Source of the DNA: Hyaloraphidium curvatum SAG 235-1
Taxonomy: Eukaryota > Fungi > Monoblepharomycota
NCBI GenBank assembly: GCA_025558095.1
Contig: JAIVFI010000005.1
Location: forward strand, 682,001-746,000
Length of the DNA: 64,000 nt
Reading direction: 5' to 3'
The translations under genes and the position numbers were made by a program. How positions within the stretch are numbered: the first letter of the stretch is position 1; every line of letters begins with the position of its first letter. The notes beneath the pieces are model-generated. The model saw nothing but the letters and a program-made list of their open reading frames with translations. It had not been told where the DNA came from and searched no databases. Below, piece by piece: positions 38,064 to 62,855 of this stretch.

Positions 38064-38293
38064 TGGAGTCGCCGTGTAGGCGAGCAAAGAGCCGTAGGGC
38101 TCCTGCCTTCATTCCCCGTGCGTCTTGGAGTCGCCGTGTAGGCGAGCAAAGAGCCGTAGGACTCCTGCCTCCATCCCCGTGTGTTTTGGAGTCGCCGTGT
38201 AGGCGAGCAAAGAGCCGTAGGACTCCTGCCTCCATCCCCGTGTGTTTTGGAGTCGCCGTGCAGGCGAGCAAAAAGCCGTAGGGCTCCTGCCTC
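38064..38293. repeat. 61-bp minisatellite, ~3.8 copies
   Basis: Unit TGGAGTCGCCGTGTAGGCGAGCAAAGAGCCGTAGGACTCCTGCCTCCATCCCCGTGTGTTT starting at 38064, 38126, 38187 and 38248. Confidence 0.95.
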
Positions 38294-38321
38294 TGGTTCA
38301 GAGCTGCTTCCTCCGCAAGAG

Positions 38322-38516
38322 CATGTTCATGACCATGAGTCGGCTCTCAAGTTCCTCATGCACATCAAAACAACTGACCCCGCATTGTACCTGCTCTACA
38401 AGGAGCTCGAGATCGAGGCACTGAAGGGGTGCTGGAACTGGGCTGCCTTCCTGTGGGAACTACTTGTATACTATGGTGGAGAGGAGGGGAGGGAGATGTG
38501 GGAGAAGGACACCTTT
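38322..38516 (+). mobile_element. Diverged LINE fragment, inverted relative to the array
   Basis: VHDHESALKFLMHIKTTDPALYLLYKELEIEALKGCWNWAAFL...MWEKDTF is homologous to the array ORF with many substitutions. Confidence 0.9.
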
Positions 38517-41500
38517 TAATGGGCCATGAATAGAACAGTCAACACAAAATCCGCTCTGAAACCACAGCTGATTTTTGACAAACCACGGATGAATTACCAC
38601 AAACCACAGACAGCACACTTTGACCCACTCAAAACAGGGACGCGCAGTGTCTGGCCCCAGTCATCCATCTTGACGCCATTGAGCACGTCATTGAGGAGGT
38701 TGACAACAGCTTGCTTCAGTACTGCAGTCCCGTACTTGACGAACTCGAGCCGGATCCCATCCTCGTCCTTTGCCTTGCCGTTGGGGGCCTTCTTCAAGAC
38801 CCTCTCCAGCTCCTTGAGGGTGATGGGCGCAGCAGGTCTCCAGAAGGCGTGATCGTGGCCTTGGGAAGTGGTGGAAACGTGAGCCTTGGATCCTCCTCGA
38901 TCTTGGTCACGTACTCGGCGCTGGCGGCCTAGAATAGAATAGTATTGGTGACCCGGACCTGCCCCTGGCTTGGCCGCTGTTACACCATGAGTTTGCTGCT
39001 AATTGCAAAGTTCATTGTCGTCGTGTGTCTTTTTCATTTTCCCAGTTTTCCTGTCCTTCATGGACTTTGAGATGAAGCTGGCAATGGAGTTGAGGGCCTT
39101 CTCCTTCTGCCGCCTCGCTTTGATCGTGGGCTCGAACTCCTTGATGCTAAGAGCCCAGAGCCAGGTCTCCATGTTCCACTCGCAGCCTAGTGCTTCCAAT
39201 CTAATCTGCAGCTTCTGGCGCCGCTCTGCATTTGCTGAACAGTGAAACAGAAAGTGTTGTTCGTCTCCAATGTGCTCAGGGTCATGCTTGCACGTTCTCT
39301 GCTGCACCTCAAGTCCTTGGTGCCTGCCTGTCTCCACCTCCAGGTCGTGGGTAGAGCACAGCAACTTTTGGACATCCCTCCGGTGCTTCTCCACCCGGAT
39401 CAGGGATGGTCCGATGTGGCCAAAGGTCATGTCACACATCCTCCAAAAGTGCAGTTTGTCGTTGTCCTTGAGCCTCTGGGCATTGATCTCCCTGAACTTG
39501 CCCTTCACAAGATTCTCCACAGTCTCCTTGGGCCATGAGAAAGTGTCCTTCTCCCACATCTCCCTCCCATCTTCGCCGCCATAGTATACAAGTAGTTCCC
39601 TCAGGAAGGCGGCCCAGTTCCAGGACCCGTTCAGTGCCTCGATCTTGAGCTCTTTGTAAAGTAGGTACAGCGCAGGATCCGCTGTTTTGATGCGCATGAG
39701 GAACTTGAGTGCCGACTCGTGGTCATGAACTGCAAGGGGGTACTGGCCAGTGATCGCATACAGACAGGCCAGGGAGGTAGACTTGGGCAGATGAGTGACG
39801 GCACGAAGAGCCATGCATGTCACTTTGTCCCTGGTGCTTTCCCCGGCAAGGTACTCCTCCTTCGGCAACTCAACAATGAACGGGTTCCCATATTGGCCCA
39901 CTGCCTTGACCTTTGTGTTGTAGAGCTTGAGCTGGAGGTCAGGACTCATCCCAGGCTGCTCCCTGATGTCACGGAGCCAGAGCCCATAAGCAGCGTTCAT
40001 CTTGGCCTCTCTGCCATGCACATGGTCCTTGCTCCGGCCGGTTGAGGTCAGCTGATACCCCAGAAGCTTGAAGCTGTCAACCCTCTTCAGCTCCTGGTCC
40101 CTGTACATGAGCTTTACACGGTGATGAGGTATCCTCCTGGCCATTCACTCTGTCTTGCTGACGTTGATCTCCAGCCCATTGGCACTGGCATATGCAGACA
40201 AAAGATCCAGCTGCATCTTGGCATCCTTCACCGTCTTCGAGATCAAAGTGGTGTCGTCTGCAAAGAACAGAGCCAGCAAGCTGACCATCCTCTCCTGATC
40301 CTCTTCCTCCTCAGACACCATGCCCAGATCCATCCCTTTTGCACCATTGGCCTCCATGAAAGCAGTGATGTCGTTGATGAACAAGATGAAGAACAGCGAC
40401 GAGAGAGGGTCCCCCTGCTTCACTCCGGTCAGGAACTTGATGAAGTCTGACTTGGTCCCGTCTTCATCCCGGAGCCGTCCCCACACGCGCCCGAACGCCA
40501 TCTTGAACATGTCAACAACCTGTTTGGGTACTCCCATCTCCTCCAGCTTCTGCCATAACCTGGGGCGCTCCACCGTGTCAAAAGCCTTTGTGAAATCTAC
40601 AAACACCATGATCAGCTTCTCCTTGCGTGCCTTGGCCAAGGAGAAGAGTGCCTTGGCGAGGAACACTGCATGAAGGGTCGATCTCCGTGCACGGAATCCA
40701 AACTGCGAGCCTTCCAGCAGCTTGTTGCACTCAGCCCAGGGAGCTAGCCGAGCATTCCAGACCAGGGAGAAGACCTTCTCCAGCGTCCTCTCTATGCTGA
40801 TGCCTCGGTAGTTGCCAGCCACGTTCTTGGGCCCCTTCTTGTGCAGCATCACCAGCAGTGTCTGGCCCCAGTCATCCATCTTGACGCCATTGAGCACGTC
40901 ATTGAGGAGGTTGACAACAGCTTGCTTCAGTACTGCAGTCCCGTACTTGACGAACTCGAGCCGGATCCCATCCTCGTCCTTTGCCTTGCCGTTGGGGGCC
41001 TTCTTCAAGACCCTCTCCAGCTCCTTGAGGGTGATGGGCGCAGCAGGTCTCCAGAAGGCGTGATCGTGGCCTTGGGAAGTGGTGGAAACGTGAGCCTTGG
41101 ATCCTCCTCGATCTTGGTCACGTACTCGGCGCTGGCGGCCTAGAATAGAATAGTATTGGTGACCCGGACCTGCCCCTGGCTTGGCCGCTGTTACACCATG
41201 AGTTTGCTGCTAATTGCAAAGTTCATTGTCGTCGTGTGTCTTTTTCATTTTCCCAGTTTTCCTGTCCTTCATGGACTTTGAGATGAAGCTGGCAATGGAG
41301 TTGAGGGCCTTCTCCTTCTGCCGCCTCGCTTTGATCGTGGGCTCGAACTCCTTGATGCTAAGAGCCCAGAGCCAGGTCTCCATGTTCCACTCGCAGCCTA
41401 GTGCTTCCAATCTAATCTGCAGCTTCTGGCGCCGCTCTGCATTTGCTGAACAGTGAAACAGAAAGTGTTGTTCGTCTCCAATGTGCTCAGGGTCATGCTT

Positions 41501-41806
41501 GCACGTTCTCTGCTGCACCTCAAGTCCTTGGTGCCTGCCTGTCTCCACCTCCAGGTCGTGGGTAGAGCACAGCAACTTTTGGACATCCCTCCGGTGCTTC
41601 TCCACCCGGATCAGGGATGGTCCGATGTGGCCAAAGGTCATGTCACACATCCTCCAAAAGTGCAGTTTGTCGTTGTCCTTGAGCCTCTGGGCATTGATCT
41701 CCCTGAACTTGCCCTTCACAAGATTCTCCACAGTCTCCTTGGGCCATGAGAAAGTGTCCTTCTCCCACATCTCCCTCCCATCTTCGCCGCCATAGTATAC
41801 AAGTAG

Positions 41807-44800
41807 TGTTGGAGTGGCTATGGGGCGTGGGGAAGACGTAGCCCCAGTGGTCTGAACCGGGTCAGAACTCAGATGGACGGGATGGGGAGAGGGACAGTTT
41901 CACGTTGACCCGTTGTCCATTCCCTTGTGATGACAAGTCCCTAGATGACCCCTCCGGTCGTACCCAAGTATCCCCACACGCCAATAGACTCCCTATTGAG
42001 ATAGAATCGAAGCAACAATCCATTCCAACACTCCCCCTTGTTGCAAGATTCCCTCCAGTGCATATCAATCCCAACAACGTAGCAATGCATAGGTTCCAAC
42101 ACTCCCCCTCGTTGCAAAGTTGTCTCCCAGATGTGATCTCCGTTGCAAACCAGTTGCAATTATCAAGTCACTTTCAATACTCCCCTCCTGTCAAGAATCC
42201 CTGAGAAATCTCCAGTTTCACTTTCAAATCTCCACAAATCCCCTAAGTGCTTTGAAATGCTCAAACTTAGCTATCCACTTTTGGTCCTTCAAATTCAGTC
42301 ATTTGCATCACAGTGTTATGCACCTCTTGCTAGTTTCCTGCACACAGACTGGTTCTGCCTCGTTGCACATTGCACAGATCCTTCTGCTGATTCTAAATCA
42401 AAGCTCAACAGTCCCATTGCATGCGTGGTTTCTCCAGGTCCTTCCACCTGGTCAGTTTCCACCATTCCAGAGTCTTCCTAGAATGTCTGGCTCTTCCATT
42501 GGTCACATGCTCTGCTCCTTTAGAGTCCATCCAGTTGTCCTTCAAGCTTGTTGGCAAAGCACTCTGATGATGTCCTTGCAACATCCAGTTGTCCTTCAAG
42601 CTTGTTGGCAAAGCACTCTGATGATGTCCTTGCAACACCTCCTCCACGTGTCCCGTGTTGACTGGATCAAAAGCACATCTCCCAGAAAGTGATTCACCAA
42701 CAGCAAGTCTCCCAGAAAGTGAGTCACCCTTCATCACTTCCCCTGAATCGCTTTCTTCTGCTCCTTCCAGGAATGGGTCATTGCCTTTACAGTGTCCAAG
42801 AACATCTGTATCACCAATACCCTTTGTCTCTGGTTCATCACCCTCAGGATCCATTGTGTTGCAAGTACCCAAAATCAAAGACTGCTCATACAACTCCACT
42901 TCCTTCTGAATCATGTCTGTTCCGGAATGATTGTCCTTCAAGATCCCCATGTCAATTTCGCAAAGCAGCTGTCCGTTTGCATCTTTAGTCTCCTTTCCCA
43001 AGTCAGCAACAAAATCTGTTTCAGCATCTCCATTCTGAACCAAATTCAAATCCCCCTGGTTATCCGGCATGTTCAAATCGTCTTGCATGAGTGTCTGCTG
43101 CATCCCTCCATATGATGCGTCCAATTTCTCAGCTCTGCTGAAGGTACTTCCACTTCCACAGTCAGGCCCTCCTCTGGTCAAGTCACACACCTCATGTCCT
43201 TCGAAATCTGAGCCTCTAGCTCCCTCTGCAAGGTAGGGATCATCCTTGACGATCTCTGCGTTCATCTGATACGAGCCGTTGTGCAAACTCAGTGTTCCCA
43301 TGAGTTCACCCTCTGGGGAAAGAATATTGCCACCCTCTGGGCCCAACAGCACCAGGAATCCCATCTTCACCACGCTCTCAATCGATGGCAATGCTCCACA
43401 TCGATCTCCAATGTTTGCATCCTCCATCAAAGTGATGATCTTCCCTGTCAAGAACCTCAGTTGTGTCTTCTGAATACCGCCCGCCATCGCCGATCCCTTC
43501 GTGGTCCCAAAGTCACGTAGGCCACAAACATCCTCTCCAAAAAGTGGTTTCTCGACCTCCAACACGTTCCTAGACGCGTTATTTTCCTCCATGGTCCTGT
43601 CCCCGAGAGCATTCACGTGTGCTGCCTTCCTGGAATCCTCCAGCACTTCATGCTCACGTTCCTCTCCTTGGAACGCGTTCTCCTTCCAATCCTTGACTCC
43701 CAGTGCCACTACCATATCCACGAGGTTCTCCTTGATCAGATTATCGTCCAAGGTAAGCTCCATCTGCTTCTCCTCACGCGCATTGGTCTCCGCGATCCTC
43801 TTACAGAGTGTCTCCCAGTGTCCAGGTTCCCCGCAACGAAGACACGCGTTTCCGCGGTGTAAGCAATTCCTGGCGTAATGCACAACCTCTCCACACATAT
43901 AGCAAGCGTTTCTCGACGCGTTTCTCGTGCTTCCACGTGATTGATCACCACCTCGCTCGACACCGCGTCGTTTCTGACCTCTGACACGTTTTCCATCGCC
44001 ATCTCGGCCTCCCTTGGATGCTCCTCCATCTGATCTTCGAGTTTCCACGGTCGATTGTGCTCCCTGGCACTCCTCATTGGCGCTCCGTCCCGCTGTGCCT
44101 TCAGACGTGTTCCAGAGTTCGTTCTCCCTCGCGAATTTCCTCTCCAGACCGTCCCAGATCTCCCTGGCAGTGTCCACAGAGAAGAATACACGTTGCAGTG
44201 CCCTTGGTAGAGTCTCCAGGATCAATCCCTGGGCCACTTGGTCGTGTGCAATCCAGTCGTCCATGTCCTTGGTCGTGGCCCCTGCCACACCCACAGTTGG
44301 CTTTGCCATTGCTCCTGTCACGTAGGGCAAGAGTCCTTCTATCTGGAGCTTCTTTTCCATCGCAAGCTTCCAGTCTCGGAGGTTCCTTCCGTCCTCCCTG
44401 AGAATGGTCCCCTGTACCACTCTCCATATTCTGCCTCCCATCGTGAACTCAATTCCACGATCCCGCAAGCTCCTCATCTTGAGCACGCTCTCTTTCAGCG
44501 TTCTCCAACCTGTCCAGGCAGTTCCAGAACCAGCGTTGGTAGATTGCGGCTCCCCCGGCTATGTGCGCCACCCGGCAACTTCACAGCCGCATCTTTCGTC
44601 TTTCACAACCCTTTGGGCTCATAGACCTGTTTGAGTGGCTATGGGGCGTGGGGAAGACGTAGCCCCAGTGGTCTGAACCGGGTCAGAACTCAGATGGACG
44701 GGATGGGGAGAGGGACAGTTTCACGTTGACCCGTTGTCCATTCCCTTGTGATGACAAGTCCCTAGATGACCCCTCCGGTCGTACCCAAGTATCCCCACAC

Positions 44801-44849
44801 GCCAATAGACTCCCTATTGAGATAGAATCGAAGCAACAATCCATTCCAA
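41807..44849 (-). mobile_element. Non-autonomous Ty1/copia LTR element nested in the LINE
   Basis: Near-identical ~224-bp LTRs (41807-42030 TGTTGG...CCAACA; 44628-44849), PPT (AAGGGGGAG) next to the 3' LTR, half-tRNAiMet-type PBS GGTCTATGAGCCC. Confidence 0.95.
42405..44486 (-). CDS. Copia gag (UBN2-like + two CCHC knuckles) with degenerate pol remnant
   Basis: NLRDWKLAM..DQVAQGLI..AREIWDGLERKF; CYMCGEVVHYARNC; CLRCGEPGHWETLC. No intact integrase or RT motifs. Confidence 0.85.
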   Translation of the reverse strand: MLKMRSLRDRGIEFTMGGRIWRVVQGTILREDGRNLRDWKLAMEKKLQIEGLLPYVTGAMAKPTVGVAGATTKDMDDWIAHDQVAQGLILETLPRALQRVFFSVDTAREIWDGLERKFARENELWNTSEGTAGRSANEECQGAQSTVETRRSDGGASKGGRDGDGKRVRGQKRRGVERGGDQSRGSTRNASRNACYMCGEVVHYARNCLHRGNACLRCGEPGHWETLCKRIAETNAREEKQMELTLDDNLIKENLVDMVVALGVKDWKENAFQGEEREHEVLEDSRKAAHVNALGDRTMEENNASRNVLEVEKPLFGEDVCGLRDFGTTKGSAMAGGIQKTQLRFLTGKIITLMEDANIGDRCGALPSIESVVKMGFLVLLGPEGGNILSPEGELMGTLSLHNGSYQMNAEIVKDDPYLAEGARGSDFEGHEVCDLTRGGPDCGSGSTFSRAEKLDASYGGMQQTLMQDDLNMPDNQGDLNLVQNGDAETDFVADLGKETKDANGQLLCEIDMGILKDNHSGTDMIQKEVELYEQSLILGTCNTMDPEGDEPETKGIGDTDVLGHCKGNDPFLEGAEESDSGEVMKGDSLSGRLAVGESLSGRCAFDPVNTGHVEEVLQGHHQSALPTSLKDNWMLQGHHQSALPTSLKDNWMDSKGAEHVTNGRARHSRKTLEWWKLTRWKDLEKPRMQWDC

Positions 44850-47800
44850 GAGAAAGTGTCCTTCTCCCACATCTCCCTCCCATCTTCGCCGCCATAGTAT
44901 ACAAGTAGTTCCCTCAGGAAGGCGGCCCAGTTCCAGGACCCGTTCAGTGCCTCGATCTTGAGCTCTTTGTAAAGTAGGTACAGCGCAGGATCCGCTGTTT
45001 TGATGCGCATGAGGAACTTGAGTGCCGACTCGTGGTCATGAACTGCAAGGGGGTACTGGCCAGTGATCGCATACAGACAGGCCAGGGAGGTAGACTTGGG
45101 CAGATGAGTGACGGCACGAAGAGCCATGCATGTCACTTTGTCCCTGGTGCTTTCCCCGGCAAGGTACTCCTCCTTCGGCAACTCAACAATGAACGGGTTC
45201 CCATATTGGCCCACTGCCTTGACCTTTGTGTTGTAGAGCTTGAGCTGGAGGTCAGGACTCATCCCAGGCTGCTCCCTGATGTCACGGAGCCAGAGCCCAT
45301 AAGCAGCGTTCATCTTGGCCTCTCTGCCATGCACATGGTCCTTGCTCCGGCCGGTTGAGGTCAGCTGATACCCCAGAAGCTTGAAGCTGTCAACCCTCTT
45401 CAGCTCCTGGTCCCTGTACATGAGCTTTACACGGTGATGAGGTATCCTCCTGGCCATCCACTCTGTCTTGCTGACGTTGATCTCCAGCCCATTGGCACTG
45501 GCATATGCAGACAAAAGATCCAGCTGCATCTTGGCATCCTTCACCGTCTTCGAGATCAAAGTGGTGTCGTCTGCAAAGAACAGAGCCAGCAAGCTGACCA
45601 TCCTCTCCTGATCCTCTTCCTCCTCAGACACCATGCCCAGATCCATCCCTTTTGCACCATTGGCCTCCATGAAAGCAGTGATGTCGTTGATGAACAAGAT
45701 GAAGAACAGCGACGAGAGAGGGTCCCCCTGCTTCACTCCGGTCAGGAACTTGATGAAGTCTGACTTGGTCCCGTCTTCATCCCGGAGCCGTCCCCACACG
45801 CGCCCGAACGCCATCTTGAACATGTCAACAACCTGTTTGGGTACTCCCATCTCCTCCAGCTTCTGCCATAACCTGGGGCGCTCCACCGTGTCAAAAGCCT
45901 TTGTGAAATCTACAAACACCATGATCAGCTTCTCCTTGCGTGCCTTGGGTACTCCCATCTCCTCCAGCTTCTGCCATAACCTGGGGCGCTCCACCGTGTC
46001 AAAAGCCTTTGTGAAATCTACAAACACCATGATCAGCTTCTCCTTGCGTGCCTTGGCCAAGGAGAAGAGTGCCTCGGCAAGGAACACTGCATGAAGGGTC
46101 GATCTCCGTGCACGGAATCCAAACTGCGAGCCTTCCAGCAGCTTGTTGCACTCAGCCCAGGGAGCTAGCCGAGCGTTCCAGACCAGGGAGAAGACCTTCT
46201 CCAGCGTCCTCTCTATGCTGATGCCTCGGTAGTTGCCAGCCACGTTCTTGGGCCCCTTCTTGTGCAGCATCACCAGCAGTGTCTGGCCCCAGTCATCCAT
46301 CTTGACGCCATTGAGCACGTCATTGAGGAGGTTGACAACAGCTTGCTTCAGTACTGCAGTCCCGTACTTGACGAACTCGAGCCGGATCCCATCCTCGTCC
46401 TTTGCCTTGCCGTTGGGGGCCTTCTTCAAGACCCTCTCCAGCTCCTTGAGGGTGATGGGCGCAGCAGGTCTCCAGAAGGCGTGATCGTGGCCTTGGGAAG
46501 TGGTGGAAACGTGAGCCTTGGATCCTCCTCGATCTTGGTCACGTACTCGGCGCTGGCGGCCTAGAATAGAATAGTATTGGTGACCCGGACCTGCCCCTGG
46601 CTTGGCCGCTGTTACACCATGAGTTTGCTGCTAATTGCAAAGTTCATTGTCGTCGTGTGTCTTTTTCATTTTCCCAGTTTTCCTGTCCTTCATGGACTTT
46701 GAGATGAAGCTGGCAATGGAGTTGAGGGCCTTCTCCTTCTGCCGCCTCGCTTTGATCGTGGGCTCGAACTCCTTGATGCTAAGAGCCCAGAGCCAGGTCT
46801 CCATGTTCCACTCGCAGCCTAGTGCTTCCAATCTAATCTGCAGCTTCTGGCGCCGCTCTGCATTTGCTGAACAGTGAAACAGAAAGTGTTGTTCGTCTCC
46901 AATGTGCTCAGGGTCATGCTTGCACGTTCTCTGCTGCACCTCAAGTCCTTGGTGCCTGCCTGTCTCCACCTCCAGGTCGTGGGTAGAGCACAGCAACTTT
47001 TGGACATCCCTCCGGTGCTTCTCCACCCGGATCAGGGATGGTCCGATGTGGCCAAAGGTCATGTCACACATCCTCCAAAAGTGCAGTTTGTCGTTGTCCT
47101 TGAGCCTCTGGGCATTGATCTCCCTGAACTTGCCCTTCACAAGATTCTCCACAGTCTCCTTGGGCCATGAGAAAGTGTCCTTCTCCCACATCTCCCTCCC
47201 ATCTTCGCCGCCATAGTATACAAGTAGTTCCCTCAGGAAGGCGGCCCAGTTCCAGGACCCGTTCAGTGCCTCGATCTTGAGCTCTTTGTAAAGTAGGTAC
47301 AGCGCAGGATCCGCTGTTTTGATGCGCATGAGGAACTTGAGTGCCGACTCGTGGTCATGAACTGCAAGGGGGTACTGGCCAGTGATCGCATACAGACAGG
47401 CCAGGGAGGTAGACTTGGGCAGATGAGTGACGGCACGAAGAGCCATGCATGTCACTTTGTCCCTGGTGCTTTCCCCGGCAAGGTACTCCTCCTTCGGCAA
47501 CTCAACAATGAACGGGTTCCCATATTGGCCCACTGCCTTGACCTTTGTGTTGTAGAGCTTGAGCTGGAGGTCAGGACTCATCCCAGGCTGCTCCCTGATG
47601 TCACGGAGCCAGAGCCCATAAGCAGCGTTCATCTTGGCCTCTCTGCCATGCACATGGTCCTTGCTCCGGCCGGTTGAGGTCAGCTGATACCCCAGAAGCT
47701 TGAAGCTGTCAACCCTCTTCAGCTCCTGGTCCCTGTACATGAGCTTTACACGGTGATGAGGTATCCTCCTGGCCATCCACTCTGTCTTGCTGACGTTGAT

Positions 47801-48323
47801 CTCCAGCCCATTGGCACTGGCATATGCAGACAAAAGATCCAGCTGCATCTTGGCATCCTTCACCGTCTTCGAGATCAAAGTGGTGTCGTCTGCAAAGAAC
47901 AGAGCCAGCAAGCTGACCATCCTCTCCTGATCCTCTTCCTCCTCAGACACCATGCCCAGATCCATCCCTTTTGCACCATTGGCCTCCATGAAAGCAGTGA
48001 TGTCGTTGATGAACAAGATGAAGAACAGCGACGAGAGAGGGTCCCCCTGCTTCACTCCGGTCAGGAACTTGATGAAGTCTGACTTGGTCCCGTCTTCATC
48101 CCGGAGCCGTCCCCACACGCGCCCGAACGCCATCTTGAACATGTCAACAACCTGTTTGGGTACTCCCATCTCCTCCAGCTTCTGCCATAACCTGGGGCGC
48201 TCCACCGTGTCAAAAGCCTTTGTGAAATCTACAAACACCATGATCAGCTTCTCCTTGCGTGCCTTGGCCAAGGAGAAGAGTGCCTCGGCAAGGAACACTG
48301 CATGAAGGGTCGATCTCCGTGCA

Positions 48324-48971
48324 CACAAACTAATGGGTGTCAGCTGCTCTGCACCTTACATCTAAAATTAGGCTGCGGGGGTGGGATTAGAAAAAAATCA
48401 GTTGGCGCTGCGCAGCGAAGCCAAAACCGTGCATGCCCGGGAAATTGGCAAACTTAGCCTAAATTTTGGCGAACTTGGCTCAAATTTTGGCGAACATGGC
48501 GTCTGGGGGCCGACGACGCTGGCTCAAGTGGATCGGTGGGGCCAGAAAAGGCGGAAGGTAGCTCATCCACTCGCATTCAACTTAGAGTGTTTTGCTCGAG
48601 CGAGGCTCGGGATCTTCAAGCCCTTGTACTTCCCGAATAATGAGCAAGCTGATCATCCCAGGAAAGGCGTCGGAAAAGCGAGCACGAGCTTGAAAAGCTG
48701 CAAGCTACATTGATCTGTTGAGGCAATTGAGTGGCACGGTGCAGCGGACCCTTTTGTGCGGAATCACTAGTTTCAGTGCCCTTTTTTTGGCGAACTTGGC
48801 CCTGATTTTGGCGAACTTGGCATCCATCCGGACGGACACGGGCACGCAGGGTTCTAGGCCCCCTGCGCCGGCGCAATCACAGGAACGCCAGTCCCACCCC
48901 CCGCGGCCTAATTCTAGGCATATCTCAAGCTTAAATATAGATGTGGAGCAGCTGATGCCCATTAGTTTGTG
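48324..48971. mobile_element. MITE / non-autonomous DNA transposon (~650 bp)
   Basis: Imperfect TIR: left CACAAACTAATGGGTGTCAGCTGCTC, right (reverse complement) CACAAACTAATGGGCATCAGCTGCTC. Further inverted match AATTAGGC(T/C)GCGGGGGTGGGA; internal TTTTGGCGAAC(T/A)TGGC direct repeats. Confidence 0.85.
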
Positions 48972-56428: not shown

Positions 56429-56649
56429 TGGAAGCCATGACATCGATCTCCCCCAATTTTCCCGACCCCTGGCCCTGCCGCAGTCTCCACCGCAGCGACC
56501 ACAAGAGGCTCGTCCTCGTCCGAGTCCGGAATGACGTACGCCGGCGCCGCCATTCCTCCCGGAGCGTGCGACGCGTCGAAGCAGTGTTTGCATGAGACCG
56601 CGCGCGGCGGGCGTGAGTTCCAGCGTACGCGCGGACGAGCAGCGACTGC

Positions 56650-59600
56650 ATGAGTTCCCATACCAGACGACAACGTTTGCCCTTCCCGCACGGGGCCGAT
56701 GGGTGAGGTCCGCACGCGTGCCACGTGCCCGTGAGGGCGCAGCGTCGTCCTACGCCGCTTAGCGGTCAGGTTCCAGATGGGCAAAGAGTCCCGGCGTTGG
56801 CACAAAATCCGGCCGCCGCGTGGAATGAAAAAGGATGCCGGATCTATTCGCACATCGCCAAGGACGAGCTCGGCCTCGAGTTCAGGAAGAACACAACCTC
56901 GGACAAGGAGATTGCCGACAAGGACAAGTCGCTTTACCTGCACCGCAGCATCCTGCGACTCGCGCCCTTCGCCTCGTGGGCCCCGCGAGCGCCCGTGGAG
57001 AAAGGTTCCGCTCTCGGAATCCCGGAGGAGCTGGACCTCGCTACCTATTTCCGCCCGGCACCACCCGTCGACGAGGGCAACGCCGTCGGGGACGCGGAGC
57101 CGCCGCCGGCTACGGCTTCCACGACCGCGGAGCTCAAGTTCACGGCGGAGCCGTTGACGCCGGCGCTGAGGCAGGAGTACCTCGACGCGACGCGCAATGG
57201 ACACCTCGCGCAGGCCATGCTGGGAGTGCTGTCGGCGATGGAGGCGGCTGCCGGGCTCGGCGGCAACGAGTTCATGACGCGCGTTGAGGCGGTGTACCGG
57301 ACGACAACGATCGGGGGTCTGGAGCCGCGGCACGGGAACCCGGCCGACGCCGGTGGCCGCTGGGTCTACGGGGACCTGTCCGAGATCGTGGACCCGCGGC
57401 TGCCGACGACCGAGATCTGCGCCAACTGCCCCAAGGGCGACGTGGTGCTGGGCTCCCGCCGCTACTTCCTTAACGCGACCAACAGGATCTTCTTCACCGC
57501 CCTCGACACCACCGCTTTGGACCGGCTTCGAGGTCTGCTGGCCGAGACGACGGTGGGCTCGCCTCCGCCATGGACGCGCTCATGTCTGATCCGCGCACGG
57601 CCGTGTCGCAGGACGAGGCGACCAAGACGGCCATCGGCAACGACATCGCCGTCATTGAGTTCGAGCTGCATTTTGCACGCCCGCGACACGCAGCCCGCCG
57701 ACTTTGACGATCAGCACTGGCCCAAGGCGACTCGCGCCCGCGCCCGCGTGATGGGCAACCTGGTCTTCACGGACGCTGGCAAAACCTGCCCCCTCCTATT
57801 CGTGGGCATCGTGCGCACACTGCCTCTGATGCGTTTCCTGACAGCCCTTTTGCGCCCAGATCGACGGCGACGATGATTGTTGCTGTTGCGACAGCATGTC
57901 TAAGATGATGGGAGGCGGCGAGTGGGATGCCGACGTCGCCAAGCGAGCTCTGCTCCTTCACCGCCGCATCCAGCTCGAGCACCTTCGGCTGGAACTCGCA
58001 GCATTCCGCCCGACCTTGGTCATCGGCTTGGGGTCAAACATGGCCCGGATGCTGTGCTCCACGAGCGGGAGCCCTCACCTGCCCAAGCGCTCCCTTCCGT
58101 TTGCGACCGGCGGCATCCTCAACGTGGAATTCAACGTGCGCGGCTCCGATCCCGCAACCGCCTTCCAGCTCGCGGTCGCGCCGCACCCTGTGGCATGCGC
58201 AATGCTGCCCTCCCACCTGGCCGACTCGGTCACCGCCCTCTGCCTCCTCCCGAACCCTGCCAAGGCGGAGGCCGGAGCGGTGTTCGACCCGTCGTCGTAC
58301 TCGGCGGTCGCCGCGCTGGACGCCGCGTCTCGGCTCGCGGCGCGCACTATCGTCCCTGAGGTCTTCACTTTCTGGCCCGAGCGGGGCACCGAGGGCGTCA
58401 CCCACCTGGAGTCGCTCCCCGCGGCTCACCAACGGATCCCTGAGTCGTTCATACCCAGCTGGCTGATATCGAGCTGCGCCAACCTCTTCACGTCGGGCTT
58501 CAAGGAAAAGTTCAAGGACCGGTTCCAGGCCTACCTTGAGATCTTCGCTGCGAATGGCCTCCGCGACCTCGCCTTCGGGAAGTCCCGCACGTACCTGGAT
58601 CGGGCCACCCGCGCGCGGATTGGGCAAGATGCGCCCGCACCGCCGGCAGGCCTCCTGGGCGCGCTGGCCTACCGGCTGCGGTGTCTGCTGGTCCCGCGGT
58701 CCGGTCAGGCGGCGTCTGCTGCGGTCGCCGAGGATGGGGATGAGGTTGCCGTGCTGCTCGAGGACGACGGGCAGGACGCGGTGGCGCTGACGCCGCGAGA
58801 GAGCGTCGCCGCCATCTACGGCCTGAAGCCGCAGGTTGCGGATATCGTCAAGGATCTGGATGGCCTCGGGCGGCATTTTCTGGAACGTTCGTCGGACAGG
58901 ACGCGCGCCAGCACCCAGTCCCTCCTGGATGCCGCGCGCGACCTTCTCTTTGGAGCTCCGGGCGGTGCCGCGCGCCTCCGTCCGATCGCCGACATCCGCC
59001 GCGACGCCGGGCTCGGCGAGGTCGCGTTGACGGACCTGAAGCTCGACGATAAGCTGGGATTTGTCCGGAGCGCTGTCGTGGCTGGGGACCTGAACCAGCG
59101 GCTCACGCCGAGGCTCCATGCGGGCGATCGCTTCTCCAACCTGGACAACGCGGTGTTTGGGAAGTGGCTTGCAGCGTACGTCGGCTTCCTGCTGCGCCAA
59201 GACGAGGGCGGGAAGGACGAGTTCGGTGCTTCCGTGTCGTTTGGCCTGGCGGACTCCCTGGACCACTGCAGGATCCCTGGGGCGGCAGACGGTAGGGTTC
59301 TGGCCAAGGTCAAGAAATGTCTCCGGGACCAGGATCCCGGCGTGAAACTCGAAGGAGGCGACGTGTCCACCCTCCTCCGCAACTATGCCTTGCCAGGCGC
59401 CGTGGCGCTTGGCGCCGGCTCTCCCCGAGATCGACTTCATCGTGAATCGAGCAACTACATCGCGTCGAACGGTGTCGCCACCAGGGTGCTCTTTGAGCAC
59501 CCGCATCATACCAAGGGCTTCAACCGGCTGGGTGGGGCGCGCAGCGCAGTCAAGGTAATGGCATGCTCGCAGCCAAGTTGATGGTCCGCTGACGGTCGAC

Positions 59601-61526
59601 CCACCTTCCTCGCAGCCGGGTCACGGTGATCTGCCTCAAGATGCCAAGTGGGTGGCTAGTTGCGTCGGGTGCCAAGGAGGAAGGGGCTGCGATCGCAAGT
59701 ATCCGAGATGCGGGTGAGCTTTGCCCCAGTCAATTGGTGCTCATTTCCTCCTAATCCTTAACTATCTACTCACCCGTAGCGCCTGCACCAACGCGAATCG
59801 GCAGTGCATCTACAAGATGCCTGTGTGCGAGTGCTGCAACAAGGCGCGTCGCGTCTGCGACGGCAGAATGCCCTCGTGCGGGTAGGTTTCCGTTGTTGAC
59901 ACCTCCTCGCACCTCGTGTTGCTGACTGACACGCTTTCGAACATCAGGCAGTGCACGTATGCAGGGGACACCTGCTCGTGGGAGTTCTTGACAGCCAAAG
60001 GAAGGCGGAAGGCCGGCGACGCCGAGGACTTTGAATGGATCTCCCACGCGCACCACCGCACCATCCCCGAGCTCGCCGGCTGGCACGTTCCCGGCGCCGG
60101 CGCCTCGTCGACGCACGCCTTCATGCGTGGCGTGGTGCTCGAGGGCGAACTCTGCACCAGCTCGGATCCCGGCCCCCGGAACGGCGTCTTTTTCCAGAAG
60201 ATGAAGCAGGGCGAGAAGGACGTCGTCTATTACTTCGACCACAAGCCGAGCGTCGAGACGGCCACCGACGTCGCCTACAACATCGTCGCGGCCTCGGTCG
60301 ACCCGGGTGCCAAGGGCGACACGATTTCGGTCACGGCCTTTGCTGTGGGGAAGGACGGCAAGCTCGAGGAGCTGACGCTCCACCGCTTGTTCCGGCCGCT
60401 GTCGTCGAAAGGGTACAGGGCGAAGGACGAGGCGGCGCGGCCCGACGAGTGGTGGACGGAGCACGAGGACCTGTCGACGCTGATGGCCGAGGTGTCGAAG
60501 TCGCCGTACCCCGTCGACGGCATGCTCGCAGGTGGGCATTGACGAAGCTGCTCTGGCTCGTGGTCGCTCACCCGCTCCTATATTCGCCGATCCGCCTCGC
60601 AGCGTCTGCGTTCCTCAACCACGCCGGCTCGCTCCTCGACCACGCGCAGAGCCGCCACGCCCAGCTCGCCAAGGAGTACCGCTTCCGCGAGAACCAGGCC
60701 CGCCAGGCGGCCATGAAGAACTGGATTCTCGCGGCCGGGGAAGCGGTGTGGCGCCAAAAGGTCTACCTGGAGGCCTTCAACGCCCACGTGGAGAAGGAGC
60801 GGCCGAAGCTCGGCGAGCCGCCGCCTGACCGCGACCACGCGCGCAAGATCGAGGAGGGTGCGCACGCAGCGGGCAGGGACGCGGTGGCGGCGATCGAACG
60901 GATCCCCAACCCCATCGTCCTGTGCGGTGCCGGCCAGGGCACGGGCTCCCGCATGCCGTACGTCGGCAGCATCGCCGATTCTCGCGGCCGGGGAAGCGGT
61001 GTGGCGCCAAAAGGTCTACCTGGAGGCCTTCAACGCCCACGTGGAGAAGGAGCGGCCGAAGCTCGGCGAGCCGCCGCCTGACCGCGACCACGCGCGCAAG
61101 ATCGAGGAGGGTGCGCACGCAGCGGGCAGGGACGCGGTGGCGGCGATCGAACGGATCCCCAACCCCATCGTCCTGTGCGGTGCCGGCCAGGGCACGGGCT
61201 CCCGCATGCCGTACGTCGGCAGCATCGCCGAGTTCCTCTCCCGCCACTTTCTCGTCTTCTTGCTGGGCGAGTACTTTACCTCCCAGCTGTGCCCGACCTG
61301 CCTCGCCAAGCTCGAGCCCAACCCGCTCAAGCGCGGCGACGTCGTGCACAAGCGCTGTGCGACCTGCAAGCGCAACCCCGACCGCGACGGCTTCGACGGC
61401 GAGCTGGTTCTCAACAAGAACCGCTCCGCCACCCTCTGCCTCGTCAGGATCTTCCTTCACATCGTCGCCACTGGCGACCGGCCCGCAGTCTTCACCCATC
61501 GGGCCGCCTCTCGCAACGCCGGATAA
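56650..61526 (+). pseudogene. Fanzor1 (TnpB family) fusion: UDG-like domain + 2x Zn2Cys6 + RuvC; 8 exons, ~1396 aa when repaired
   Basis: Exons 56650-56702 (tentative), 56763-57552, 57612-57810, 57860-59554, 59616-59713, 59780-59881, 59948-60531, 60603-61526. RuvC-I AASVDPG (D at 60300), RuvC-II GEYFTSQLCPTC (E at 61269), second CxxC, RuvC-III NKNRSA, terminal GDRPAVF. Disrupted by a +1 at ~57671-57674 and a 253-bp duplication. Confidence 0.85.
60724..61229. repeat. 253-bp tandem duplication inside the last Fanzor exon
   Basis: Units start at 60724 and 60977 with GA microhomology; the length is not a multiple of 3. Confidence 0.95.
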
Positions 61527-61673
61527 ACCTACCCGGCACTTATCTGAATGAGTGAGTCTCGCGCCCATAGATGGGGTATCAGGGTGTTGCGAGTTTTTGA
61601 TGGGGGCGGTTAACTGACGGAAAGCACGCCCCCCTCCCCCTTCTTCCTCCCCCGAAGCCATGACATCCGAATG
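61527..61673 (+). ncRNA. Putative Fanzor omegaRNA (scaffold to 61653, guide from the flank)
   Basis: Lies between the Fanzor stop and the element right end. Stems CTCGC/GCGAG enclosing CCCAT-AG-ATGGG, and GGGGGCG(61602-61608)/CGCCCCC(61627-61633). Confidence 0.55.
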
Positions 61674-61682
61674 AGAAGAGGT

Positions 61683-62855
61683 TTATTGGACCCCAAACCG
61701 GCCCATAAGCCGCTGGAAAAGCCCGCCGCTCTTCTTCTTTGGTTCCGCTTTCTCCGCATTCCCACTGTCCTCCTCAACCTCCTTTTTGGCCTTTGGAGAC
61801 GCCGGTGCCGGCTTCGCGGCGGTCGGGCCTACAGCCCGGGCCTTCACGGCCTCGATCAGCTCCAGTCCCTTCTGCTGCCGTGCCAGCATCTCCTCCAGCA
61901 GAGCTCGCTTGTTATCCCCGGCCTGCACTTCGCCCGTGGCCAGGTACGTCGTCCAATCGTCCCACGAGATGCGCGCTTTCCACGCCAGGTCGTACTTTCC
62001 CCGTTCGATGATGCTACGAAGGTCGTCGTCCGAGATCGACGCATCCAGCCTCGCGTAGGCTTCCAGCTTGGCCTTGATGTCGTCCATCGCCTCCTTCCGC
62101 GCGGCAACCTCGCGCGAGATTTCCCACTCGGCCCAGTCGACCCGGGTCTGGTCCGCCTTCCGCTTGTCCTCCAAGGCGTGCTCCAACCGCGTCACCAGCC
62201 GCTCCAAAAAGCGCTCCCGCGTCGACAGCTTCGCTTCCTCCTTCTTTTTGAGGTACCGCGCGTACCAGTCCGGCTCCTTCTTCTGCTGCGAGGCAAGGAG
62301 CCGCAGCCGCACCAGCTCCAGTTCCCGCCGGACCTTGGGCAGGAACTCCAGGGCAAACAGGCTGTGCGTGTCCGTCGGCGAGTCCACGAGCTCGATCAGG
62401 GCGCGCTCGCCCTGGTCGCGCTGCCGGTAGCCCGCGAGGGTGACGCGGGCAAAGTTCTTCTTGCGGTCGCGGTAGCGGAACCGCAGCTCCCCGAGCAGCT
62501 TGGGGACCACGGTCTCTTGTTGCTGCAGGATGGCCGCGGCGCGATGCGCCCGTGAGCAGGATTCCGGCGCCGATCGCGGCGGGCACCCACGTAGACCTTG
62601 TAGCGGAGCGCCCACCGCGCGTAGTCCGTATCGCGCTTCGCCAGCGCGATGGCCTGCCGCCACATGAGCCGTATTAGGGACATCGAGGCGCGCGGCCGGC
62701 GTTCCCACCTTCTCGGCCACCTTCTGGACCTCGCGCGCCTTTGCGTTTGTCGTGATTATCTGCTCGTGCACGACGAGCTGGCCGAGCAGCGTCCGCAGCA
62801 GGTCGCGGCGGTGCAGCGCCGTGCGGCCGAGCTTCCGCATTCGCTGCATCGGCAT
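61683..62855 (-). CDS. MRPL17: Mitochondrial ribosomal protein bL17m with long C-terminal extension (2 introns)
   Basis: RKLGRTALHRRDLLRTL..LVVHEQIITT.AKAREV...AEK/AIALAKR...PKLLGEL..RY..R...ALIELVD. Confidence 0.93.
   Translation of the reverse strand: MPMQRMRKLGRTALHRRDLLRTLLGQLVVHEQIITTNAKAREVQKVAEKVGTPAARLDVPNTAHVAAGHRAGEARYGLRAVGAPLQGLRGCPPRSAPESCSRAHRAAAILQQQETVVPKLLGELRFRYRDRKKNFARVTLAGYRQRDQGERALIELVDSPTDTHSLFALEFLPKVRRELELVRLRLLASQQKKEPDWYARYLKKKEEAKLSTRERFLERLVTRLEHALEDKRKADQTRVDWAEWEISREVAARKEAMDDIKAKLEAYARLDASISDDDLRSIIERGKYDLAWKARISWDDWTTYLATGEVQAGDNKRALLEEMLARQQKGLELIEAVKARAVGPTAAKPAPASPKAKKEVEEDSGNAEKAEPKKKSGGLFQRLMGRFGVQ

Follow-up and report, generated by a model that had tools for sequence, protein, structure and literature searches.

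Does an RNA-guided nuclease encoded by a transposon of a freshwater fungus carry a DNA glycosylase domain, and if so, what would that domain do beside the nuclease? The question is raised by a locus of Hyaloraphidium curvatum SAG 235-1 lying within a stretch of 64,000 nucleotides, which was analysed as a whole and is called the window (contig JAIVFI010000005.1, positions 682,001 to 746,000, forward strand). An earlier note, made from the sequence alone, had placed a uracil-DNA glycosylase (UDG)-like domain at the N-terminus of a Fanzor protein and proposed base damage instead of double-strand breaks. The domain very probably has a strongly diverged UDG-superfamily fold and is under purifying selection; we tentatively propose base excision alongside cutting as its role in intact copies.

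The domain and its host protein

Five copies of the UDG-like domain are present in the H. curvatum genome, distributed over three element families about 45% identical to one another. The host protein is one giant, spliced transposon chain of Fanzor1 type, 2,450-3,000 residues long. Full NCBI models are P0004 (2,987 aa, contig C14), the intact twin of the window copy, and P0003 (2,449 aa); model P0001 is mis-spliced in part. Single exons or the stored NCBI models P0001-P0004 served as queries in the searches. From the N-terminus the protein consists of an N-terminal extension, an XPG/FEN-like region, a long linker, the UDG-like domain, a helical region, Zn2Cys6 clusters and a Fanzor-type RuvC. 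The XPG/FEN-type region was recognised by motif evidence only (V-D-x-P, E-A-D and S-D-R-D), and a database search returned no match for it; the Zn2Cys6 clusters were scored in the P0003 counterpart (Pfam Zn_clus, E 1.1e-5). The UDG-like domain occupies about residues 1805-2075 of P0004, mid-protein, behind the XPG/FEN-like region. It thus precedes the Zn2Cys6/RuvC part but is not N-terminal; it had looked so because the window copy is 5'-truncated. The N-terminal extension of the C14 family was observed to contain two ubiquitin-looking segments with L-R-G-G-like ends (P0004 residues 290-460, L015), and P0003 lacks this extension.

In the window the domain is encoded as follows:

57361-57552, + strand: first part of the domain, with strand 1, motif 1 x-N-C-P-K (57424-57435), F-L-N-x-T-N (57466-57483) and the start of an inserted helical hairpin
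57553-57611, + strand: intron, 59 nt, GT..AG, joint seen in RNA-type contigs
57612-57801, + strand: middle exon, with the end of the hairpin, strand 2 with an invariant Asp (57772-57774), and Cys-Pro (57787-57792)
57802-57859, + strand: intron, 58 nt, GT..AG, joint seen in RNA-type contigs
57860-58255, + strand: last part of the domain, with a CCC cluster (57878-57886), the helix-Pro-strand-GLG signature (57974-58039), a beta-hairpin, motif 2 P-H-P (58178-58189) and a closing helix

The three UDG-like motifs described earlier are all present on the + strand in the correct order, and the peptide stretches quoted for them lie over three exons: NCP at 57424-57432, N-A-T-N at 57472-57483, GLG at 58025-58033 and APHP at 58178-58189. 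Of the two outcomes that the earlier note had named as refuting, neither occurred: the motifs are conserved in homologous copies, invariant across all three diverged families, and the evidence on the fold, treated below, did not go against the UDG type. Ninety domain positions are identical in the three families, including (P0004 numbering) N1832, C1833, P1834, N1848, N1851, D1929, C1934, C1945-1947, G1996 and H2047. Identity between families is 38-53% in the domain, near the XPG-like and RuvC peaks, versus 18-35% on either side of it. The ratio of nonsynonymous to synonymous substitution (dN/dS) is 0.16 for window versus C14 and 0.27 for the second family pair, like the rest of the gene (RuvC row of L009/L010 excluded as out of frame); the domain is under purifying selection. 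Alignment rows L009 and L010 include one in-frame intron, read through. Within the domain lie the inserted coiled-coil helical hairpin, of about 55 residues, and five invariant Cys, which could bind a metal.

Relatives outside this genome were found neither among 1.8 billion representatives nor by word-index searches nor in bacterial, viral or metagenome contigs, all searches of limited reach; a literature search, likewise limited in reach, found no description of a natural Fanzor or TnpB protein fused to a glycosylase or a flap nuclease. Another four RuvC-like loci, more distant, were noticed in the same genome (G000:C2:953071, C30:190341, C13:280755 and C11:497135), and hidden Markov model (HMM) searches located no UDG-like domain in their vicinity.

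Fold and active site

An ordered chain of UDG motifs, built from bacterial UDGs only, lands on the domain segment with z of about 7. The chain score is 7.1 bits, versus a mean of -19.7 for column-shuffled controls (standard deviation 3.5, maximum -7.8, n=100), and five conserved UDG blocks were found in the right order. ESM features of the domain return PF03167, one AlphaFold model gives a family-4 UDG/TDG match across the whole domain, and the best match of the family-4 HMM falls in this domain in all four proteins.

Several results weigh against the assignment. No structural comparison score is significant singly, and the second structure model gave no UDG match. PF03167 does not rise above the Pfam cut-off in the domain; Pfam, NCBIfam and PDB-sequence searches returned no UDG match, and profile-profile comparison with Mug and family 2, 4, 5 and 6 alignments gave probabilities below 3% throughout. 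Scored alone in the chain test, the motif-1 block is negative. The spacing limits of the chain were set with the target known, and the shuffles abolish secondary-structure periodicity. The sub-threshold structure scores, the model with no UDG row and these features of the motif test would all suit a generic alpha/beta three-layer domain that merely resembles a UDG. Against such a domain stand the convergence of sequence motifs, language-model features and the first model on the UDG superfamily, the alpha/beta segments elsewhere in this chain, which did not score, and 290 non-UDG decoy open reading frames, which reached at most 5.1; a generic domain is improbable. The UDG-superfamily fold is supported because several lines, each below threshold, converge (motif chain, ESM features, one AlphaFold model). 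Wide structural searches were dominated by the helical hairpin. P-H-P was preferred as motif 2 over a Mug-like L-P-N-P shortly downstream: in both models a strand precedes P-H-P, but a helix precedes L-P-N-P.

Active-site residues were assigned by motif register, with residue roles taken from PMC5387724. In motif 1 (x-N-C-P) Asn stands at the Q63/E41 position, and Cys takes the site of the water-activating Asp/Asn of families 1 and 2. Strand 2 ends in Asp (D1929) at the position of the family 4 uracil-binding N80, as in family 6. Families 1 and 4 are matched in motif 2 by an invariant His (H2047), which follows the last strand. This mix of residues fails every family definition, and the domain therefore falls outside the numbered UDG families; by the same residues its specificity for uracil is doubtful.

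The closest likeness is to family 4 (UDGa) and UdgX, which supply the best structural matches and share the helix-Pro-strand-LG signature, a beta-hairpin followed by a His-Pro motif 2, and Cys-Pro after strand 2. Motif 1 differs (x-N-C-P-K, not G-E-(A/G/Q)-P-G), as does the Asp in place of N80. Family 4 and UdgX enzymes have a four-Cys iron-sulphur (Fe-S) ligand pattern; the domain has no N-terminal CxxC but five invariant Cys elsewhere. It also has no recognisable motif-3 Asn, and it carries the hairpin insert and the CCC cluster. With families 2 (Mug/TDG) and 6 it shares an aromatic-x-x-x-x-Asn segment after motif 1, and TDG is among the whole-domain VIA matches, whereas G-I-N-P-G is missing, Cys replaces the family 2 catalytic Asn, and the motif-2 His is absent from family 2. 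With the family 6 hypoxanthine-DNA glycosylase (HDG) agreement is limited to that segment and D-V-x-x-x-C on strand 2: of the family's G-S-x-P-G, W-D-V and P-S-T-S none is present in full (G-S-M-P-G is missing), the motif-2 His is absent in family 6, and TIGR04274 has no match in the domain; a family-6 profile alone fails to detect it.

The nearest precedent is the phage polymerase with a fused active UDG, the SP15/YerA41-type PolA (PMC13697223), where a mobile genome likewise encodes a UDG as part of a large enzyme that handles DNA; fusions of this PolA-UDG type appear among the Atlas and BFVD structural matches. There the genome is that of a prokaryotic virus, the partner is a polymerase and not an RNA-guided nuclease, and PF03167 is recognisable. 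Descent of the Fanzor domain from the host's own Mug-type gene on C20 is unsupported, as PF03167 or Mug searches do not touch the Fanzor loci. That host gene (L013/L032, G000:C20:148598-149077) shares up to 59% identity with Mug proteins of bacteria; a horizontal acquisition is likely, and the gene is unrelated to the Fanzor domain.

Proposed base excision beside cutting, and the alternatives

The 3' part of the element contains:

60300-61526, + strand: Fanzor-type RuvC/TNB region, with DPG (60300-60308), GEYFTS with the rearranged Glu (61266-61283), an N-type third RuvC site (61410-61430) and the stop codon (61524-61526)
61515-61640, + strand: conserved hairpin spanning the stop codon, a splice donor near 61552, and branch-point with pyrimidine tract at the element end, from a six-copy alignment

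Cas12f1-like_TNB (PF07282) matches with E 0.006. The rearranged Glu is typical of Fanzors (PMC10530073). In the RuvC triad D-E-N, E and N are invariant and D (of DPG) is present in all three families; triad and zinc-binding Cys are among the best-conserved parts of the protein. Asn at RuvC-III was considered as inactivating and rejected, since GtFz1 is active with a D-E-N triad (PMC11423790). The protein resembles Fanzor1 (SpuFz1, GtFz1) in DPG, in Gly at the canonical RuvC-II site with a downstream Glu, in its zinc finger and introns and, as read from the alignment, in a conserved 3'-end hairpin; the Asn at the third site is shared with GtFz1. It is four to five times longer than either, with XPG/FEN-like, UDG-like and Zn2Cys6 modules added, and solved Fanzors gave no sequence match.

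In the earlier proposal the domain acts on the strand displaced in the R-loop and leaves abasic sites or mutations where double-strand breaks would otherwise be made; that would be a natural RNA-guided base editor. Domain and RuvC do share one polypeptide (P0003 and P0004, with RNA joints connecting the UDG region to the RuvC exons), and UDG families containing His act on single-stranded DNA (PMC5387724). Yet the nuclease keeps its triad and zinc-binding Cys, a displaced strand of normal DNA would be no substrate unless the enzyme cut a standard or host-modified base, and no deaminase was noticed in the protein. There is no sign of the nuclease being given up, so replacement of double-strand breaks is unsupported, and the editor has little probability.

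A UDG fold with no glycosylase activity is a second alternative: a module for DNA gripping, base flipping, or Zn or Fe-S binding that holds the target or aids processivity. Poxvirus D4 offers a parallel for such a non-catalytic role. The reshaped motif 1, with Gly lost in two families and Cys at the catalytic Asp/Asn site of families 1 and 2, the variable stacking aromatic, the five invariant Cys, the large insert and selection equal to that on the rest of the gene all fit this alternative. It is rather unlikely, in that the motif-2 His, the strand-2 Asp and the two Asn do not vary between families that are 45% identical, and UDG families 4-6 likewise have no motif-1 catalytic residue and are still active (PMC5387724).

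Because a flap-nuclease-like region lies in the same chain, a base-excision module for intermediates of cutting and copying is the most economical reading. On this proposal the domain of intact copies would keep a working base-flipping pocket and, acting on single-stranded or flapped DNA, excise a non-standard base, whether uracil or another one altered by deamination or modification. Such DNA would form once RuvC has made its RNA-guided cut, during copying of the element into the target or its repair there, and the flap-nuclease-like domain would trim intermediates in the manner of long-patch base excision repair; excision would accompany cleavage, not replace it. Taken whole, with catalysis included, the proposal falls a little short of an even bet. 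A bolder version, which we consider unlikely, makes the intact copies a natural eukaryotic RNA-guided base-excision enzyme, its guide RNA aiming a new UDG-superfamily glycosylase at a chosen locus to remove a modified or standard base and so nick, mutate or demethylate DNA with the flap-nuclease-like domain, possibly via the motif-1 Cys or a Cys-bound metal.

Base editors have been engineered by attaching glycosylases or deaminases to RNA-guided proteins; if active, the domain would be a counterpart produced by evolution, and within the UDG superfamily its active site would resemble none in families 1-6. Activity would also bear on how elements in which no transposase was recognised copy themselves. 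The claim is directly testable, since P0004 is an intact, transcribed twin. Three copies were observed to be 5'-truncated at differing points (window 56836; L012:4900; L019:3490-3950) with a common 3' end, which suggests that element copying starts at the 3' end.

The same hairpin, donor and branch-point arrangement is present in all copies (L008:7825-7975 in the C14 copy). An RNA contig departs at 61551 and continues into sequence that lies, in the C14 copy, after a CAG just past the shared element end, and the last intron therefore closes at or beyond the element boundary. The segment 61515-61640 is a candidate guide-RNA scaffold and terminal intron, an arrangement that could supply the guide from flanking DNA.

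The window copy and its surroundings

Could the window copy itself make the domain? Its further features are:

56836-61640, + strand: giant spliced Fanzor1-like element, 5'-truncated, delimited by blastn to the C14 twin locus L008
58256-59554, + strand: remainder of the long exon, mostly helical, 18-35% identical between families
59616-59990, + strand: small exons with Zn2Cys6-type clusters, from RNA joints (introns 59555-59615, 59714-59779 and 59882-59947)
60724-61231, + strand: 253-bp perfect tandem duplication shifting the RuvC frame in the window copy, which may be an assembly artefact

The copy is 92-97% identical in DNA to its C14 twin over its length and matches P0004 residues 1636-2987 only. 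Both are transcribed and spliced: RNA-type contigs have both domain introns removed, and four further joints downstream connect the UDG region to the RuvC exons. Relative to the twin, a 2-nt deletion near 57670, missed in the earlier note, breaks the middle exon, so that motif 1 is cut off from the remainder of the domain. RNA contigs carry both forms at 57670 (depths of about 340 and 380) and the DNA run carries the window form, so the frameshift is real; because it splits the domain, the NCBI model of this copy, P0002, begins after it. Truncated and frameshifted, the window copy cannot make an intact domain, and a function of the domain in this particular copy is unsupported.

Immediately before the truncation point, at 56466-56796, lie two short pieces that recur elsewhere on the contig at 92-98% identity and are covered by RNA-type contigs; the truncated copy may owe its transcription to them. 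Farther away, 38064-48324 is a cluster of 1-2 kb direct repeats, 99.5-100% identical, with lower GC and strong skew, representing either a mobile element array or an assembly duplication. On the - strand at 61683-62855 lies the gene for ribosomal protein L17 (Pfam E 5e-18), tail to tail with the element and ending about 45 bases from its 3' end.
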